From Mantamonas sphyraenae STR306 (Eukaryota > Protista > CRuMs), in assembly GCA_026936335.1 (NCBI GenBank), contig JAPMXV010000069.1:62001-126000 (forward strand): DNA of 64,000 nt, in the 5' to 3' direction. Below are positions 47,946 through 58,325 of the stretch, one piece after another. The notes under the pieces are model-generated. The model was not told the origin of the DNA. It did no database searches and saw nothing but the letters and a program-made list of their open reading frames with translations. The position numbers and the translations under genes were made by a program. Each line of letters starts with the position of its first letter. Position 1 is the stretch's first letter.

Positions 47946-49880
47946 TCACTTGACGCGGATCTGACGCAGCATGATGTAGGAAATGAAACGGAAGAACAGC
48001 ACATTGGCTGCCAGAATGAGAAAGTTGGTGGGCAGATCTGTGCGAATGCCGTCGACAATGCGGTTCAGCACCTTTTCGCCCGCCTCGAAGCAGTTGATGT
48101 CATTGGAGACCAACACTTGCTTGATGCTGGGCGAGAGGTTGGACAGAGGCAAGGCAATGGCCGTCTGGTTGACTGCAAACGGGACGTTGATGATGGACAG
48201 CGGAAAGTCCAGGTTGGTTTCGCAGGGAATGTTGCGACCGACAAACTGCGTCAAAGAAATGCTCTCGTACGCGTACTTGAAGTAGTTGCTCCAATACACC
48301 CACACAAACCACACAGGGGTGTTTTCCAGAGACAGGAAGTACCCATTGAACTGCATGAGGAGCGTGAGAAAGATGGTCAACACCACATTGGCTGCCTCCA
48401 TGGATGACACCGTGGCGGCACAGGCAATGGCCACACCCGCACTGGCTTCCATTGTCAACCAGATGGCCAGGATGAACACCACCAAGGCGTAGGCGTCGTC
48501 CTTGTACCCGATCATGTAGTAGCAAATGATACTGTACACCGTCGCATACAGCAGGTTGTACGGTATCTGCACAGTGAGCATGGCTGACACAAAGGGACCG
48601 ACTGTGTAGGCACCTGCAGCACGCTCGCGGATGAACACGGCGCGGAGAGCGGGAAACACAGTGATGGCGGCAAACGCAGGCACAAACGAGGCGTTGAGGA
48701 TGATGAAGAAGAAGGAGGAGGTGACGTCGCGCGCACTCTTGGTGGTCAACGACAATTGCCAGTAGCAGAGGCCAGTAATGACGGCGAGGACAACGTTGGC
48801 ACCGATGGCAGACTGGAAATTGAGTGGATCACGCCAGTTGTCGGTGAAGAAGCGCCAGAGGAGCGCACGGTACTGAACCCAGTACGAAGCCGGTTCGGTG
48901 TCCTGCTTGAGATCTTCGATGCTGCCCTTGGGTTGTTGTTCCAAGAGAGATGTGAGTTCTGCGGTGGCCTGTGCGCAGGTGTCACTGCGTTGGTAGGCCT
49001 GCTCCACCTCGTGCACACGGCCTCCCTTGATGACATCCAACATGTGGTCAGCCGGGTTGACAAAGCGACGGATGGCAAAGCCAGCGCCAGTGAATATGGG
49101 AAGGGCGTCTGCTGCGGGGCCAAAATATACTTGGCGACCCTTGTGGAGGAGGAGGAGACGGTCAAATTGTTCAAAGATGGAATGGCGGGGTTGGTGGATG
49201 GTGCACACGGCTGTGGTGTTGCCACGTCGTACAATGGCACTGAGGGTGCTCATGACACTGAGGGCAATGTTCGAGTCCAACCCGGACGTGGGTTCGTCCA
49301 GAAACACCAGCTTGGGTTCGCTGATGAGTTCCGAGCCAATGGTCACACGTCGCTTCTCTCCCCCACTGATGCCTCGTGTGCGTGCGTCGCCCACCCTTGA
49401 TTCGGCCACCTTTTCCATGCCCAACACCTCCAACAGCTCCTGCACACGTGACTTGCGCTGCTTCTCGTCCATCCCCGGCGGCAAGCGCAGCCTTGCATTG
49501 AACTCAAACGTCTCACGCACACTCTGCGAGCCCAGAAGCGCGTCTGTCTGCTTCACGTAGCTTGCCACGTCGCGCATCTCCTCGATGGGAACCGCGTGGC
49601 CGTCCACGCGCACCTCACCGCTCACCTGGCCCTTGTCGAAGCGACCCGAGAGGATGTTGAGGAGGGACGTCTTTCCCGCACCCGATGGACCCATGATGGC
49701 CAGCACCTCGCCCGGACGAGCGAACGCGGACACGTTGTCCAGCACCAACTTGTCCACGGGCGGAATCGGACCAAAGCCCATGGCCTGTCGCACCTTGTCC
49801 GCTCCTTTTAGTTGTTCAATCGCCTCGTCGTTGCTCACAGGCACCGTGAAGGACACGTCGCGGAACGCAAGTGTGGACAT
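47946..49880 (-). CDS. ABCG (White-family) half-transporter 1
   Basis: GPSGAGKT, ISGGEKRR, FLDEPTSGLD, CTIHQP, NPADHMLD, C-terminal TMD with FIRE...GAY. Confidence 0.96.
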   Translation of the reverse strand: MSTLAFRDVSFTVPVSNDEAIEQLKGADKVRQAMGFGPIPPVDKLVLDNVSAFARPGEVLAIMGPSGAGKTSLLNILSGRFDKGQVSGEVRVDGHAVPIEEMRDVASYVKQTDALLGSQSVRETFEFNARLRLPPGMDEKQRKSRVQELLEVLGMEKVAESRVGDARTRGISGGEKRRVTIGSELISEPKLVFLDEPTSGLDSNIALSVMSTLSAIVRRGNTTAVCTIHQPRHSIFEQFDRLLLLHKGRQVYFGPAADALPIFTGAGFAIRRFVNPADHMLDVIKGGRVHEVEQAYQRSDTCAQATAELTSLLEQQPKGSIEDLKQDTEPASYWVQYRALLWRFFTDNWRDPLNFQSAIGANVVLAVITGLCYWQLSLTTKSARDVTSSFFFIILNASFVPAFAAITVFPALRAVFIRERAAGAYTVGPFVSAMLTVQIPYNLLYATVYSIICYYMIGYKDDAYALVVFILAIWLTMEASAGVAIACAATVSSMEAANVVLTIFLTLLMQFNGYFLSLENTPVWFVWVYWSNYFKYAYESISLTQFVGRNIPCETNLDFPLSIINVPFAVNQTAIALPLSNLSPSIKQVLVSNDINCFEAGEKVLNRIVDGIRTDLPTNFLILAANVLFFRFISYIMLRQIRVK

Positions 49881-49958
49881 GTGTTGATGCAGGGCGAAAA
49901 AAAGATTGGGATGGTCCGGGCTGAGACGCGGTGGGAACCACAAGAGAACCCAAAAGAA

Positions 49959-52460
49959 ATGCTCCGCAACGACGAGGAGAACGAATATACGTCTTCAGAC
50001 GCGGGCGAAGAGGAAGAAATGGACGAAGCGGAGACTGTGGGAGTGCCTGCGGAGGACGAGTACACGTCGTCCGACGACGAGGCGGAGGAAGAAAAGGAGG
50101 GGGAAGCGGCCACGTGGACGACGAGCCCGAACAACACCCGCAGTGTGGTGGTGAAGAGCCCTTCCATGCCGTCTTCACGACGCGTGGTGCCCATTTCCAG
50201 CCATATGGAAAGCTATGCCGTGTCATCATCCTCTGCGGATGGCAAGGACATGGAGCGTGAAGAAGCAAGCCTGGCAAAGGCAGACACAAGCCAGGCTTCC
50301 TTCCTGGCCGACCTGCCGCCTCCGGAAACGCTGGCCATGTCGTGTCAGCAACTCACGCACACAGTGAAACTCAAGACACCGTTCTGGAAGAAGAAGAGAG
50401 GCAGACAGTCGTCGAATGATGCGGCGGCGACAACCAAGCGCATCCTGGGGCCTGTGGACGTGTTTCTGCCGCCGGGCAAACTGACGGCCATCATGGGTGC
50501 GTCGGGAGCCGGAAAAACCACGCTTCTGGACGCGTTGACCAACCGATACTCGGAGGGCACGTCGGAAGGGACGGTGCTTGTGGGTGGTCGTCCACGACGC
50601 TCGTGGAAACTCAAGCAGCAGCTTGCGTTTGTCAAGCAGGAGGACTTGTTCATCCCGTCGCAGACGGTGTTTGAAGCCCTGTGGACGCACGCTCGTCTGC
50701 GGCTGCCCAACGACCTGAGCGACGCCAGACGCCTGGAAATCGTACGGGGCGTACTCAAGGTGTTGGATCTCACCGATGCCATGGACACCATGGTGGGCGA
50801 CGAATTCGTCAAGGGGATCTCCGGTGGCGAACTGAAACGACTGGCGATTGCGGCGGAATTGCTGACCAATTTCAGTATTTGTGCACTGGACGAACCCACC
50901 ACCGGGTTGGATGCATCCACGGCGTTGAGTGTGATGGAGGCCATGTTGAGTCTGGCACGTACGGGACGCACGCTGGTGTGCACCATTCACCAGCCTCGCC
51001 TGGAGGTGTTCCAACTCATCGACCATCTGGTGCTCCTCTCACGTGGACGTGTGGTCTACCAGGGCCCAGCCATGGACGCCGTCGCCTACTTTGCCAATCT
51101 GGGTCTGGAATGCCCTCCCACAGAAAACCCTGCTGATTTCCTCCTCGACATCCTCAGCGAGGGTGCAGGCCAGTTGCAGCTCGGCGACCTCAAGCCACAT
51201 GTGCGCATGAGCCAGGAAAAGGACACGGAAGCTGCTCACAACGACGACGACGACAACGGCCACGATGCCATCGATGCCCTGATCGACAACTACCAGCGCA
51301 GCAGCCAGCGTGCAAAGGTGCTGGCGGATATCGAGGCCGACGCACGTAGCCACGGTGGCGGTGACGACAACGATGAGGATGATGGTGAGGTCAACGCTCA
51401 CGAGCAAGAGGAGAGTGGGGCCAATGACAGCAGCACCACGGGGCAACGGGTGCGTCATTGGCTCGGATGGGGACGACACAAGGCACCCTGGTGGGTGCAA
51501 TTTTGGGTGCTCCTCAAACGCGAGTGGCGCAACACATATCGAAACCCGCTCATTCTGGCATCGCTGACGTTTGAGTACCTGTTTTTTGGTCTGTTTGTGG
51601 GTTTCTCGTACTACCAGCTCAACCTGTCGCCTGCAGGCGTGCAAGACCGCATTGCAGTCGTGTTTTGGGTCCTCATGACGGCCATCTTTGTGCCCACCTT
51701 TGCTGTGGTGGTGTATTTCCCCAAAACACGGGCGGTGTTCAATCGCGAGTACGCCTCCGGCATGTACTCCTCCTCTGCGTTCTACCTGGCCGCCACTGTG
51801 GCAACCATTCCGTCTCAACTGGTGCTCATGTTGGTCTTTTGCGGCGTGGTGTACTTGACGGTGGGCCTGCGCGAAGGCGTGGCTACCTTTTTCGAGTTTT
51901 ACGGCCTGGGTGTCATCTCGGCCGAAATGAGCTTTGCTCTGGGACTCACAGTCAGTGCGGCTGCACCCACATTTGAATCGGGCAACGTGTGGGCCACCGT
52001 CGTCACCTTTGTGTTTCTCCTCACCGCAGGCTTTTTCGTTTCGTACGACTCGCTGCCCGACTTTCTCAAGTGGATCACCGTGATCAATCCGTACAAGTAC
52101 ATGTACGACGCGTACATGACGAACCAATTTGGCGGTGTGGCGTTCACGGGCAAGGCGTTCGATCCTGTGGTTGTCAAGTGCAACGTGACGCAGGCGATTG
52201 CCAACGTGGCCGTCAACGTGACCGCAACCTCGGTTGTCGACGGATCCACATTTGTCACACAGACCACCCTGGGCGACATTGTGCCCAGCATGACCTGCAT
52301 TGACAACGTGTTCTTCAGCAACGGCACACAGCTGCTCAAAGAATTCGACTTGGACTCCTTCTCCGTCGCCGAAAACGTCGCCTGGCTGACCATTGTCATC
52401 GGCATTGTGCGCATCGTCGGCTACCTCATTGTGCGCTACGTCAAGATTGGCAAGAGCTGA
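49959..52460 (+). CDS. ABCG (White-family) half-transporter 2
   Basis: GASGAGKT, ISGGELKR, LDEPTTGLD, CTIHQP, ENPADFLLD, C-terminal TMD with FNREYASGMY. Confidence 0.96.
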   Translation: MLRNDEENEYTSSDAGEEEEMDEAETVGVPAEDEYTSSDDEAEEEKEGEAATWTTSPNNTRSVVVKSPSMPSSRRVVPISSHMESYAVSSSSADGKDMEREEASLAKADTSQASFLADLPPPETLAMSCQQLTHTVKLKTPFWKKKRGRQSSNDAAATTKRILGPVDVFLPPGKLTAIMGASGAGKTTLLDALTNRYSEGTSEGTVLVGGRPRRSWKLKQQLAFVKQEDLFIPSQTVFEALWTHARLRLPNDLSDARRLEIVRGVLKVLDLTDAMDTMVGDEFVKGISGGELKRLAIAAELLTNFSICALDEPTTGLDASTALSVMEAMLSLARTGRTLVCTIHQPRLEVFQLIDHLVLLSRGRVVYQGPAMDAVAYFANLGLECPPTENPADFLLDILSEGAGQLQLGDLKPHVRMSQEKDTEAAHNDDDDNGHDAIDALIDNYQRSSQRAKVLADIEADARSHGGGDDNDEDDGEVNAHEQEESGANDSSTTGQRVRHWLGWGRHKAPWWVQFWVLLKREWRNTYRNPLILASLTFEYLFFGLFVGFSYYQLNLSPAGVQDRIAVVFWVLMTAIFVPTFAVVVYFPKTRAVFNREYASGMYSSSAFYLAATVATIPSQLVLMLVFCGVVYLTVGLREGVATFFEFYGLGVISAEMSFALGLTVSAAAPTFESGNVWATVVTFVFLLTAGFFVSYDSLPDFLKWITVINPYKYMYDAYMTNQFGGVAFTGKAFDPVVVKCNVTQAIANVAVNVTATSVVDGSTFVTQTTLGDIVPSMTCIDNVFFSNGTQLLKEFDLDSFSVAENVAWLTIVIGIVRIVGYLIVRYVKIGKS

Positions 52461-52573: not shown

Positions 52574-55500
52574 TCACTTCTTGAGCTTCTTGCCCGTCTG
52601 CGAGTACTTGTGGCCGTACTTGTTGTACTGGGCCTTGAGCGAAGCCTGGTAGGCGGCGCTCTTGCGGACCTGCGCAAAAATCTTGCGTGCGTACGCCTTG
52701 GAGTCGAGTGCCTCCTTGTACAGGGCGCGGCCCTTGGCGACGTTGGTCAGCTTGTACTTCTTGCACGCAGCCAGCGTCTTGTTGGCCTCGCGGTCGAGCT
52801 TGACGGCGTCGGCGTGCAGCTTCTTGAGCCGCTGGATCTCCTCCGACTTGCCGTTCATGGCCCTCTTGACCTCGCCCACGGCGTTGCGCTCGTCGGTGGT
52901 CATGTATGCCTTGAGTTGCGAGACACCCACGGGCTTCTTGTCCATCTTCTTCTCCTCCGCCGCGTCGGCCGGGGCGTGGATGTGACCGACGGCCTTGGCC
53001 TGGCGAGCGATCTCCTCGGCCTTCTCCTGGGCAATCTGCGCCAGAGACTTCTTCTTGGGCGCAGGCGCAGGCTTCTTGGCCTTGGTCTTGCGGGCCACAA
53101 TCACCTTGGCCACCTTGCGCAACACCTTGCGCACAATCTTGCGGGGGTGCGGCACAAACTTGCGTGCCTTCTTGACAAACTTGGTCAGGCGCTTGCGCAC
53201 AGAGCGCACGACGCGACGCACACGCACACGACGCACAGTGCGCACGACGCGACGCACACGCACGCGACGCACAGTGCGCACGACACGGCGCACACGCACG
53301 CGACGCACAGTGCGCACGGCACGGCGCACCGTGCGGCGCACAGCACGCGTGATGCGACGGAACGCACGGCGGCCCCACATGTCGCGGACCTCCGGGTCGT
53401 TCTCCATGTCGCTCAGGCTGACGTTGACATCCTCGTCGTCGTCGTCCTCGTCGGCGTCGGCGTCCTCCTGCTCGGGCATGGCCGAGGTGGCTGCAAAGTC
53501 GCTGTCCTCCTCTTCCTCGTCGACCTCGGACTCGTCGCCCTCGGAGTAGTCTGTGCTCTCGTCGTCGCTGTCGTCCTCGTCGTCCGAGTCGACCTCAAAC
53601 ATGGCGTCGTAGTCCACCTGCGGCTGGTTCATCAGCTCCTGCTCCGCCTTTTGCAGCGCAGGCAGCGTCAAATCATCCTCGGGGACAAGCTCAGGGTGCA
53701 GCTGCTCCATGGGCGGGATCATGTCCGTGACAAACTCGTCGTACAGGCGAGCCTGCAGGTCGGCGTCGATTTCCTCGTCGCTGTCGTCATCCTGGACCAC
53801 GTTCTCCTGCTCCTGCTGCTGCTTCTGCTGCTGCTGAGCATCGGCCTCGGCATCCTCGTCCTCGATGCGCTTGGCGGCCACCGTGGCAGCAAAGCCGTAC
53901 GGGCGCTTGGCGCAGCCGCAACGGCCGCAGCCGCCACAGCCGCAGCGGCCGTGCATGGTCGACGCAGGCTGCGTGCCTGCAAACACAGGTGCCTTGTACG
54001 GCGCCTTGGCAGACGTGCTCGGGAACATGGGCTGCTTGTACACAGGCACGCGCGTGACCGTGTGGTGCTGCGACACAGGCTTGCTCAGGAAAGGCTTCCA
54101 AGCAGAAGTGGCCGTGGCGTACGCGCCCGTGGCCGTGTACTTGGAGCCCTTCTTGGAGCCGTCGTTGTTGGTGGCCGGGTGCACCGAAGGCGCAGCCGCC
54201 TTGGACGCCTGCAGCTTGGCCAGCTCGGCCAGAGCGCTGGCCACCACCTGGCGCACGTTGCTCTTGGCAGCCTTGCCCTTTTGGGCCAGCGAGGCAAACG
54301 AGGCGCCCAGCTTGCCCAGCTGCGCCTTGGCCTTGCTCTTGAGCGCGTCCAGCTCGGCAGCCAGCTTGTTCTTCAGCAGCGACTTGAGCTGGCTCTTGGA
54401 CAGCTTGCTCAGCTTGGCCTTGGCCTCGCCCAGGTACTTCTTGGCCATGGCCTTGAGCTGGCTCAGCTTCAGGCCCTTGAGTTTCTTCGACAGCAGCGAC
54501 TTGATGCTGCCCAGAGACAGGTTCTTCAGGTCCTTCAGCTGCGGCACCAGCTTGCTCAGCTCCTTCTTGGCCAGCTTGGCCAGGTTCAGCTTCTTGAGCT
54601 TGCCCAGCTCTGCGCCAAGCTTGCTCTTGAGCAGCTTCTTGAGCTCGCCCTTGGACAGCTTGTTCAGCTGCGCCTTGGCCTTGCCCAGGTACTTCTGAGC
54701 CATGGCCTTGAGGCCGTCCTTGTTCAGGCCCTTGAGCTTCTTCGACAGCAGCGCCTTGATCTTGCCGCCAGACAGCTTCTCCAGGTTCTTGAACTCGGGC
54801 GCCAGCTTGGTCAGCTTGTCCTTGGCAATCTTCATCAGGTTGCCCTTGTTGAGCTTGGCCAGCTCCGGACCCAGCTTCTCCTTCAGCAGCTTCTTGAGCT
54901 CACCCTTGGACAGCTTGGACAGCTTGGCCTTGGCCTCGCCCAGGTACTTCTCGGCCATGGCCTTGAGACCCTCCTTGTTCAGGCCCTTGAGCTTGTTCTG
55001 CAGAAACTCCTTGACGTTGCCGTTGGCAAGCGCCTCAAACTCGGGTCCCAGCTTGCCCAGGTGCTTCTCGGCCAGCTTCTTGATCTGATCCTTGGCCATC
55101 TTCTTGAGCTGATCCTTGCCGAACTTGACGGCCTTATCCTTGGCCAGCAGGGCCCAGTCCTTGGGCGCGCTGGGCAGGATGGGCTCCGCCGCAGCCTTGG
55201 CCGCCTCGGCGTCACATCCGGCCTTGACGCAGCCGTCCGCAATCTTGAACGATTTGTCAAACAGGCGCTTGTTCCAGCTGGCAAAGGTCTTGCCCATGAG
55301 GCCGAAGCGCACGCCCAGGTTGCCGCGCACGCCAAAGCGCAGCTGCCAGTAGCTCTTGAAGTACGGCTCCTGCGTCGAGGTCATGGCCGACTCCTTCTCC
55401 GAATCGGCGTCCTCCTGCTCGTCGTCCGACGACGAGTCGTCGCTCAGCGTGCCTGCAAAGTCCTGGACGTCTTCCAGGTTCTCTGCGTTCTCAATGTCCT

Positions 55501-58325
55501 CGGCGCTGGCCAGGATGGCGCGCGTCGACAGCTGTGCCAGCTTGGCGTCCGAAAAGGCGTCGGTCTCGTCGTCGGACGAGTCGCTGCCCTGCAGGTTGCC
55601 GTACGTGCCGCACTGTGCCTTGCCGTTGCCCAGGAACTGCAGGGCAATGTACGGCTCGATGGAAAAGGTGGGACCCGCCGAGTCGTACAGCAGAAAAGCG
55701 ATCTGCGGGCGCATAAACACCTCAAAGTCGAGGTTGGTGCAGGACGAGATGCGGGGCTTGAGGATCTTCTTCTTCCAGTAGGGCTTCCACACGGGGCGGA
55801 ACTTGCCCTTGTACTCGAGACCGACCTCGAGACCAGCCTTGAGCTCGATGCCTGTGCGCACGACGAGGGCGGACACAACCTTGAGGTCGTAGCCTGCAAA
55901 CAGCTCGAGGCGGCAGGTGATGATGACGGGCACGGGGCCAATCATAAACTTCCACGTCTTCATGATGGTGGACGCGAGCTTCTTGAGGTGCGACTTCATA
56001 AACTGGCCCTTGAGCTTGCCGAGCACATCGATGACAAATTCCATGTGGCCGCCAACCTTGGCGTTGAGGTACTTGAGCTTGAAGTGCTCAATCTTGCCGT
56101 TGAAGATAAACTCGTGGCGCAGGGAGAACTTGCCGCGCTTGAGGACAACCTCGACGCTGGCGGCGCGTGTTCCTGTCCTTCTTGGAGTAGAAGGTCTTGC
56201 GCATGAGCGTCTTGTTCTGGATGTCCTTGCCGGCGTAGTAGAAGCGCTTGCTCTTGTCCCAGATGAAGGTGCCCATGAGCAGGTTGATGAGGGTCTTGAC
56301 GGTGTCGACCATCTTCTTGACAAAGGTGCGCACGACCTTAAAGGCGACCTTGGAGAACTTCTTGAGCACCTTGGCAAAGGCCTTGAAGCCCTTGGCAAGC
56401 TTCTTCATGGCCTTGCCGATCTTCTTGGCGATGTCCTTGAAACGCGTAAAGATCTTGGCCACCCAGACGGCCTTGGAGGCGAAGCGGGCGACGGCCTTGG
56501 CGACCTTCTTGATGCCGCGCCAGGCCTTCTTGCCGACCTTCTTGATGGTGCGGCCGACACGTCGGGCGACGCGACGCACACCACGCCTGAAACGACGCCA
56601 ACCGCGGCTGAAGGAGCGACGGCGCCAGAAATCCATATCCTGGACCTGGCCGAGGTCGTCGACCTCGTCGTCCTCGTCGTTGTCGTCGTTCATGCGCGAG
56701 TAGACGCGGTTCATCTCGTCGCTAAACTCGTCGGGGTTCTCCACGCTGTAGCGCACCATGTCGTCCATGTTGTCGCGCACGGTGTCGCGCATCTCGTTCA
56801 TGGACTTTTCAATGACGCCGCGCTTGAACTTGAACCACAGCTCGTGCATCTTGTTGGAGGCCTCGAGGTTGGGGCCTACAAAGCGGCTGGAGCTCTTGTC
56901 AACCATGTCCTGGACGCGGTCAAAGGCAGCGTTGACGGCCATGTTGTGGCGGATCTGGGCCTCGGTGATGGTCAGCTCCTTGTGGCGCTGGATGAGGGCC
57001 TCGCGTGCGTCCGAAGGCACTTCGAGATCCTCGACCTCGCCCGTGTCCTCGTCGCGAATGTGGGTAGGCGGGCCGCGGTAGGTGCTTTCCCACTCGGCGT
57101 GCTTGACGGCGTCGAGCATACCGATGCGCTTGGTCTGGAAGGTGGCTTCCTCTTGGGCAAGATCCCACTCGGGGTCGGTGAGGACCTTGTAGAGACCGGA
57201 GTTGAGGGCAAACATGTGGCCCTTGCGGATGTTGTAGTTCACCATAAACTCCTTGGAAGCCATAAAGACACCCATGTCGATCTTGCGGATGCCGTGTGCG
57301 TTGAGGGCAAGGGTGGGCAGCTCCGATGCGTCGTCGACGTCCTCCTCATCCGAGTCGGGAGTGAAGGCGGCGCGGTGCTGCTCCTCGAGGTGAGTGCGCT
57401 CAGCAAACGAGCGCTGCAGCATGGAGATGGGGTCGTTCTCGTCCAGGAGGTTGGTGGGTTCCTTGTGCACCTTGACGTGGTGGTAGTGTTCCTCGGCCAC
57501 CTTGACAAAGTCTGGGTGGACCTCCACGTCACCAATGATCTTGGTGTCCACAGAAGCCTCCTCCTGAATCTCGGGCAGGACGGACGAATCCCAGTCGCCC
57601 AGGGCTTCGATTTCCTCGTCGGTGACCTGAGGAGGGAGGACGGGGTACGAGTGTGTACGGGACGGAGCAGGCGGTCAGGCGTGCACGTGAGGCGAGTGCG
57701 TGTGGGGTAAAGCGAGGGTGAGCGTCGGAGGATGGAACGGCGGGATGCGCAAACGAAAAAAAGCGCAGGGCCGAAAAGAAAACGTACGCCCTGAGCGGGA
57801 ATCACATCGAGGTCATCGAGAACATTGCTGTCCTCAACGGAATCGCTAGCGTGGGTCTCGGCAGGGGCTGCTGCTTCCGCAACATCCGCGCTGTGAAGGG
57901 GAAAACGGGCACGAAAGCGGGCAAATTGGGTGCGCGCCTTGGGTGAGCTTTTTTTCCACGAGAGGGTTTTCGCGCAGCGGGTTTGACCGGCGCTGGACGG
58001 TCAAGGAGATATGGGAGGCGGACGAGACAAGGTGGACTGGACGTGGGGAACACATGCATAGGTGATGGCGAGCAGATGGAGCGAGAAAGGGGTGTGGATG
58101 ACGCGTAGGCGGGCGGCCAAGGAGAGGCGATGCGCGTTTGGCGATGGGCGACGATGGCGACGAAGCGGAAACACGCGCCGGACGCGTAGTGAGAGGCAAA
58201 TGCGAGTGGCGAGAGGGTGCAAAGGGAAGAGACTGGACGGACACAGTGTGCGATACTTACCTGCTGTCCACTGCGGCGGTGAAAGCGACCGTCATCAGCA
58301 GGATGAGAATCAAGGCGGCTTTCAT
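52574..58325 (-). CDS. Large secreted precursor with alternating acidic and highly cationic amphipathic segments; introns 57891-58260, 57627-57787; apparent 1-nt frameshift near 56165
   Basis: Signal peptide MKAALILILLMTVAFTAA. Canonical introns give a continuous frame. Very strong C/G-ending codon bias on both sides of the frameshift. Confidence 0.8.
53200..53320 (-). repeat. Three tandem 36-nt repeats encoding RRVRVRRVVRTV
   Basis: Seen directly in the DNA and in the translation. Confidence 0.9.
54330..54995 (-). repeat. About 2.6 tandem 255-nt (85-aa) Lys/Leu-rich coding repeats
   Basis: ttcaggcccttgag recurs at ~54468, 54723 and 54978 (255-nt period). KLKGL..LKAMA.KYLG.AKA.L.KLSK..LK.LLK.KL repeats. 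Confidence 0.9.

Follow-up and report, generated by a model that had tools for sequence, protein, structure and literature searches.

A three-exon gene on the minus strand of a 64,000-nucleotide (nt) stretch of the Mantamonas sphyraenae STR306 assembly GCA_026936335.1 (contig JAPMXV010000069.1, positions 62,001 to 126,000; hereafter the window, with positions counted from its first letter) encodes a protein of about 1,739 amino acids (aa), whose two-part folded core is homologous to bacterial lipoproteins and is split by an insertion carrying an acidic block, an aromatic-led junction and a cationic amphipathic helix. The same acidic/junction/cationic cassette is present in other Mantamonas genes, including lipases. 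We consider it about an even chance (roughly 0.5) that the focal protein is a latent, secreted, cleavage-activated protein attacking the membranes of ingested bacterial prey; its site of action would probably be the food vacuole or the feeding surface. Mantamonads, which belong to the CRuMs group, are small bacterivores that move by gliding. M. sphyraenae has been described as a voracious bacterivore (PMC10492846), and a term search of that genome paper gave no mention of secreted, toxin or extrusome proteins.

The first part of the core lies in a region that an earlier note on this DNA, based on the letters alone, had described as ~370 aa of acidic pro-segment. The region is present, but it is mostly a folded and conserved beta domain: according to the alignment, it holds the small domain that comes first in the bacterial lipoproteins (57030-57560; this and all other features of the gene are on the minus strand), which had no Pfam or PDB match and whose profile matches 131 rows of the homologue set. 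In bacteria, a short linker joins this small domain to a long beta domain, whereas in Mantamonas ~280 residues are inserted at this point: two helices (56694-57005, opening the Mantamonas-specific insertion) come first, and the acidic block, junction and cationic helix follow. The second part is a DUF7223-like beta-sheet domain (55220-56276), and the two parts make up ~500 residues of the focal protein. AlphaFold models show a confident small beta domain (predicted local distance difference test score ~90 in the orthologue) and an elongated sheet whose longest strands reach 40-47 residues. This sheet has a conserved hydrophobic face and an opposite polar one, as seen over a set of 99 homologues.

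A complete scan of 1.84 billion representatives returned 263 matches, with Mantamonas proteins first and metagenomic proteins next. A lipobox-like start was found in 75 of 150 matches, whereas the Mantamonas proteins lack the lipobox Cys, and the C-terminal domains of the metagenomic relatives are varied (VWA, FGE-sulfatase, RCC1, PKD and DUF4215). Eleven of the 99 aligned homologues match PF23865 (DUF7223; best E 3e-6); the beta domain of the window has no match to it at the Pfam cut-off of 27 bits, and the nearest bacterial homologue, P0004, reaches 23.9 bits against that cut-off. Structure-atlas neighbours, at template modelling (TM) scores of 0.45-0.54, include a fungal DUF7223 cluster (TM 0.53) and bacterial DUF8402/DUF8403 clusters, and the DUF7223-like feature score is 0.87. 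On this transitive sequence link and the same predicted fold, the beta domain is assigned to a DUF7223-like superfamily. DUF7029 (PF22974), the usual partner of DUF7223, was matched by none of 100 rows of the N-terminal domain among the matches listed, and the pieces of the focal protein had no significant match in Pfam or NCBIfam. The earlier note had also named full-length homology to a known structural or nucleic-acid-binding family as an outcome that would speak against a lytic precursor; none was found, and the core belongs to a family of no known function, for which, as for the related lipoprotein domains, our literature search returned no paper. A likeness of the N-terminal domain to baseplate J/gp6 (score 0.88, ~130 shared features) was a weak lead that profile searches did not support. 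The distribution of the core suggests that it is likely of bacterial origin, although fungi too carry the fold; since the taxa of the relatives come from atlas clusters only, no donor is named.

Acidic segments alternate with strongly cationic ones along the protein, as had been proposed. Acidic block 1 (56631-56693), whose last residues are D-M-D, is followed by module 1 (56277-56630), which consists of an FWRRR junction and a 118-aa cationic amphipathic helix continuous with the beta domain. Acidic block 2 (53378-53866; 163 aa) is followed by module 2 (53090-53377), in which a WGRR junction and an amphipathic start lead to 12-aa Arg/Val repeats and a second amphipathic stretch, extending into a 158-aa helical tail. 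The charge is -52 ahead of module 1 (net +40) and -63 in acidic block 2, ahead of a C-terminal piece of +70, so the acidic blocks roughly cancel the cationic blocks behind them. The description of both modules as amphipathic holds in part: compared with shuffled sequences, the helical hydrophobic moment is strong in module 1 (z = 8.4) and at the start of module 2 (z = 4.6), but merely z = 1.1 in the Arg/Val repeat. The N-terminus is of secretory type by sequence: the most hydrophobic 19-mer of the whole protein falls in exon 1 (Kyte-Doolittle value 2.26), and the relatives P0001, P0003, P0006 and P0009 have N-termini similar to it.

The closest proteins to the focal one are those of M. plastica, among which P0001 (1,586 aa) is a collinear orthologue. 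It is 44% identical in the N-terminal piece; in the second piece, identity is 41% for the first 525 residues. Its parts follow one another as in the focal protein: signal, acidic block, FWRR junction, helix, beta domain and Lys-rich helix, then the Cys/Gly cluster, a second acidic block, an Arg/Val module behind D-A-D-F-W-R-R, and a basic tail. In the M. sphyraenae genome (25.06 Mb in 78 contigs were searched), the beta domain occurs 18 times, distributed over 16 genes with frames of ~900-2,800 aa. All 24 Mantamonas beta-domain copies form one group against 143 other homologues in a FastTree tree (Shimodaira-Hasegawa-like support 99), and the window gene pairs with P0001; therefore, the expansion is older than the split between M. 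sphyraenae and M. plastica. Some family members on separate contigs are near-identical pairs, namely L035 (C75) and L036 (C55), L037 (C49) and L038 (C47), and L043 (C32) and L044 (C48), which are either recent duplicates or uncollapsed haplotypes. The whole core is present twice in C75, C55 and P0002, and in the M. plastica paralogues P0006 and P0009 the beta domain contains a Lys-rich loop and the protein ends in a long helical tail rich in His and Arg.

The idea that the modules share an acidic junction is borne out by its conservation between species and its reuse in other genes. Both species have the form acidic block, D-x-D-F-W-(R/G)-R-R, and a looser form runs across the paralogues. As a strict DNA pattern, the junction was found at five places in the genome against none for a reversed control; each of the five is in frame and has an acidic block ahead of it, and the genes of four gave no match to the beta-domain profile. 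Loose DNA patterns (WGRR, FWxRR) were near background in the genome. A junction profile found about nine further open reading frames (ORFs) outside its training set (E <0.002). The junction is absent from all ~145 non-Mantamonas homologues, of which only two, both short, have a strongly basic window, which places the gain of the cassette in Mantamonas. The first beta strand is never immediately preceded by an acidic block in the 23 other Mantamonas copies checked; in most of them a cationic segment of 100-270 aa passes straight into that strand. Module 1 has no delimited end because its cationic segment likewise continues into the beta domain, so it is better seen as a tethered leader than as a free peptide. 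Some ORFs lack the beta domain and contain from one to three matches to the cassette; they lie at C57:291500-307600, C5:309600-310200, C54:161800-163800 and C68:352515, the last being a frame of 4,706 aa.

Cassettes were also identified in secreted proteins of unrelated fold. A class-3 lipase on contig C57 (L049:2999-4252, minus strand) carries an acidic/FWRR/cationic cassette within its catalytic domain, after the last core strand and before the catalytic-Asp motif, a site at which ordinary lipases carry no insert. The cassette is conserved at that site in the M. plastica lipase P0162, and in a second M. sphyraenae lipase (C32:115594-116124) a match to the cassette falls on the same position of the lipase profile. 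A search with PF05826 found no phospholipase A2 bearing the cassette. This placement inside a catalytic domain fits a tethered tag. The L049 lipase has one Cys ahead of the insert and several after it, and disulfides might hold the halves of the lipase together after a cut. Another gene on contig C42 (L047:2759-4324, plus strand) encodes a cassette, then a helical region, then a Cys-rich C-terminal domain that also ends P0009; this domain had no relative in Pfam, PDB or the sequence databases searched, and a suspected likeness to the small lobe of biomphalysin could not be confirmed. The nuclear genome further encodes three phage-type GH24 lysozymes (C34:694121, C35:305804 and C73:99702). The C35 lysozyme has a run of FWG codons 309 codons upstream, in the same reading frame.

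The focal gene is intact, transcribed and spliced, and the two introns, the 1-nt shift and the product of ~1,740 aa given in the earlier note agree with our model. Exon 1 (58261-58325) contains the start codon and the predicted signal peptide, exon 2 (57788-57890) encodes a 34-aa acidic, low-confidence N-terminal stretch, and exon 3 spans 52574-57626; the two GT..AG introns are of 370 nt (57891-58260) and 161 nt (57627-57787). Third-position GC content changes frame near 56166, and the apparent 1-nt frameshift at 56166-56167 is an assembly error, because contigs of the three runs of one study (X1, X2 and X3) are one letter shorter there and the M. plastica orthologue reads through. A programmed frameshift or a pseudogene is thereby ruled out, the short-read contigs and the orthologue both having an intact frame. 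Two of the three runs are DNA-like, with flat depth and retained introns. X3, though labelled 'DNA?', behaves as RNA: its contig skips intron 2 exactly and joins exon-1 letters to exon 2, beyond 57893, and on this ground the gene is taken to be transcribed and spliced. The best DNA run may itself underlie the assembly, and contig depth is no measure of expression. Protein searches were run per exon and per piece, with the exon-3 pieces linked in the scripts only by X. Among the long frames of the window, the effective codon number is lowest in the two of exon 3 (32.9 and 34.0), in accordance with the strong codon bias reported before. Single-base differences between the assembly and the short-read contigs occur at window positions 57242, 58327, 58352, 52927-52973 and 53585; the first differs in all three runs and is likely a second assembly error, and the remaining ones may be alleles. 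An ABCG-type half transporter gene (49812-52460, plus strand) lies tail to tail with the focal gene, ~114 nt from its stop.

The segments listed in the earlier note were all found in place, and those outside the cassettes vary in their conservation. An acidic loop within the beta domain (55367-55588) has an extra FWRR junction in the orthologue. Behind the beta domain, Lys/Leu helical repeats (54281-55162; ~3 copies of an 85-aa unit, net +53) keep their composition in the orthologue but not their sequence, and a Cys/Gly cluster (53912-53944) is matched by a similar cluster at the same place. The AAKR motif before acidic block 2 (53867-53878) is absent from the orthologue, which argues against a general processing site. 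The basic helical C-terminal domain (52574-53050) is common only to P0001 among the sequences compared (E 5e-10).

In the mechanism that we favour, each acidic block would bind and mask the cationic helix behind it in the endoplasmic reticulum and Golgi, and a protease cut after the last Asp of D-x-D|F-W-R-R, or low pH, would lift the mask. The unmasked helix, with the beta domain still attached, could then bind and disturb anionic bacterial envelopes and deliver the hydrophobic sheet face to the membrane, leading to lipid extraction or, by oligomerisation, to a pore. A second cut would free the ~270-aa Arg/Val-rich C-terminal piece, which may act alone; LBU2, a helical peptide of Arg and Val only, kills bacteria (PMC7357155). 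The cassette would be a portable 'arming' tag, which Mantamonas also placed on lipases, and passage of lysozymes through the outer membrane by means of polycationic tags has precedent (PMC4161244). We infer cleavage, location and killing; the features that speak for this reading are the junction and charge pattern, which is retained in two species and across the family, the absence of the junction outside Mantamonas, the cassette in lipases of both species, the FWG codon run ahead of a lysozyme, the bacterivorous life of the organism, the strong amphipathic moment, the near-cancelling charges and the conserved hydrophobic sheet face. As a tentative and clearly less probable extension, the cassette could have been inserted genome-wide in loops of unrelated secreted folds to yield natural Artilysin-like enzymes, with the DUF7223-like sheet as a new pore-forming or lipid-extracting class.

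Several observations weigh against a cleavage-activated membrane attack. The beta core matched no known toxin in Pfam, NCBIfam and PDB sequence searches, and Foldseek (PDB, viral) and VIA fold searches gave generic long-strand matches only. The best fold matches are small barrels (Z 9-10), while the pore-state hairpins of MACPF, CDC and gasdermin reach just Z 7-8.7 with a root-mean-square deviation (rmsd) of 6-13. The homologues in bacteria resemble common surface lipoproteins whose C-terminal domains are of adhesin type (VWA, PKD, RCC1). Leaders are weakly charged in several paralogues, dibasic sites are many in the modules (13 in module 1) and would need to escape cutting, and structural proteins are the more usual place for a size of 1,000-2,800 aa combined with long repeats and a Cys/Gly cluster.

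These last traits lead to the main rival, possible though well behind the favoured reading, in which the protein is a structural or adhesive secretion: a self-assembling polyampholyte forming a coat, a gliding adhesive or an extrusome shaft, in which the beta cores would stack as fibres or a lattice, the charged blocks would condense and the Cys/Gly cluster would cross-link. The proteins being very large, repeat-rich and strongly codon-biased, the conservation of the Cys/Gly cluster, the adhesin-like domains on bacterial homologues and the gliding of Mantamonas on surfaces (PMC12133344) all agree with such a role, but a purely structural function leaves the cassette inside lipases unexplained, and the helices are amphipathic beyond mere charge. 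That a single motif stands on unrelated secreted proteins could instead mean that the cassette serves as a tag for sorting and condensation in an extrusome or dense secretory granule, the core being a lipid-binding groove or display scaffold and nothing lytic. In animals, amphipathic helices serve as granule-sorting signals, and the one-sided hydrophobic sheet, which curls to a part barrel, is compatible with a TULIP/BPI or bridge-like lipid carrier; neither was among the fold matches listed, and a missing match does not exclude them. A 120-aa helix of net +40, however, far exceeds the need of a sorting signal, and some proteins carry more than one cassette. We regard this explanation as unlikely.

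About as unlikely, and perhaps slightly more so, is the model of the earlier note, in which the protein is a multi-payload precursor releasing free lytic peptides from otherwise disposable spacer. Module 2 has its own acidic block ahead, the ORFs on C57 and C5 hold three cassette matches each, and helices could be trimmed at many dibasic sites. A magainin-like string of released peptides nevertheless fits poorly with ~500 residues of conserved folded core, a module 1 lacking a downstream boundary and a non-conserved AAKR; the cassette ORFs without a beta domain (C57, C5, C54 and C68) are better candidates for a true peptide polyprotein. The four readings are not fully exclusive.

Precursors of the melittin, dermaseptin and magainin types have acidic pro-pieces that precede cationic amphipathic peptides. 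The focal protein resembles prepromelittin, dermaseptin and magainin precursors in its signal peptide, acidic block and aromatic-led cationic amphipathic helix, and the alternating Asp ahead of the junction recalls dipeptide-wise trimming. However, the Mantamonas helices are 100-270 aa long and tethered to folded domains, cassettes sit inside domains, no short mature peptide in the focal protein is bounded on both sides, and Pfam and NCBIfam showed no homology to a described antimicrobial-peptide precursor family. The likeness to Artilysins (PMC4161244) and LBU2/WLBU2 (PMC7357155) consists in a polycationic or amphipathic tag on an enzyme and an Arg/Val-rich helix; unlike these man-made molecules, the tag of Mantamonas is natural, would be masked by acidic blocks and is known here from sequence. 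With DUF7223 proteins and the bacterial lipoproteins of the DUF8402/DUF8403 clusters the focal protein shares the long-strand beta domain, but it has no lipid-anchor Cys, its core is split by the acidic/cationic insertion, and PF23865 is unmatched. At least four very long antiparallel strands resemble the pore-state hairpins of MACPF/CDC and gasdermin (Z 7-8.7), and activation via loss of an inhibitory piece would parallel beta pore-formers, yet there is no MACPF signature, no sequence match to MACPF/CDC, gasdermin or aerolysin, an rmsd of 6-13 and a Foldseek TM <0.2. With protist phagosomal effectors (amoebapores/SAPLIPs, Dictyostelium bacteriolytic proteins and PldX; PMC11542183, PMC7886984, PMC12242099) the focal protein has in common its proposed role, the killing of ingested bacteria, whereas it has no saposin Cys pattern or Pfam match and a wholly different architecture. 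The literature searched held no paper on the family, on a portable cassette inside folded domains or on the expansion of a DUF7223-like family by a deep-branching protist; the principle of acidic masking is already well known, and what is new is the cassette within folded domains and its use on a DUF7223-like family.

To our knowledge, how most bacterivorous flagellates kill their prey is not known, and effectors have been described mainly from amoebae. If the structural reading is true, these proteins would be the first candidates for components of a coat, adhesive or extrusome in a group in which ultrastructural data are lacking (PMC12133344). If the arming-cassette reading is true, they would give the DUF7223 family its first function and reveal a new prey-killing system in a deep-branching eukaryote. 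A maskable cassette on a 16-gene beta family and on lipases points to an undescribed prey-attacking toolkit, and may offer a first function for an uncharacterised domain that is widespread in bacteria and fungi.

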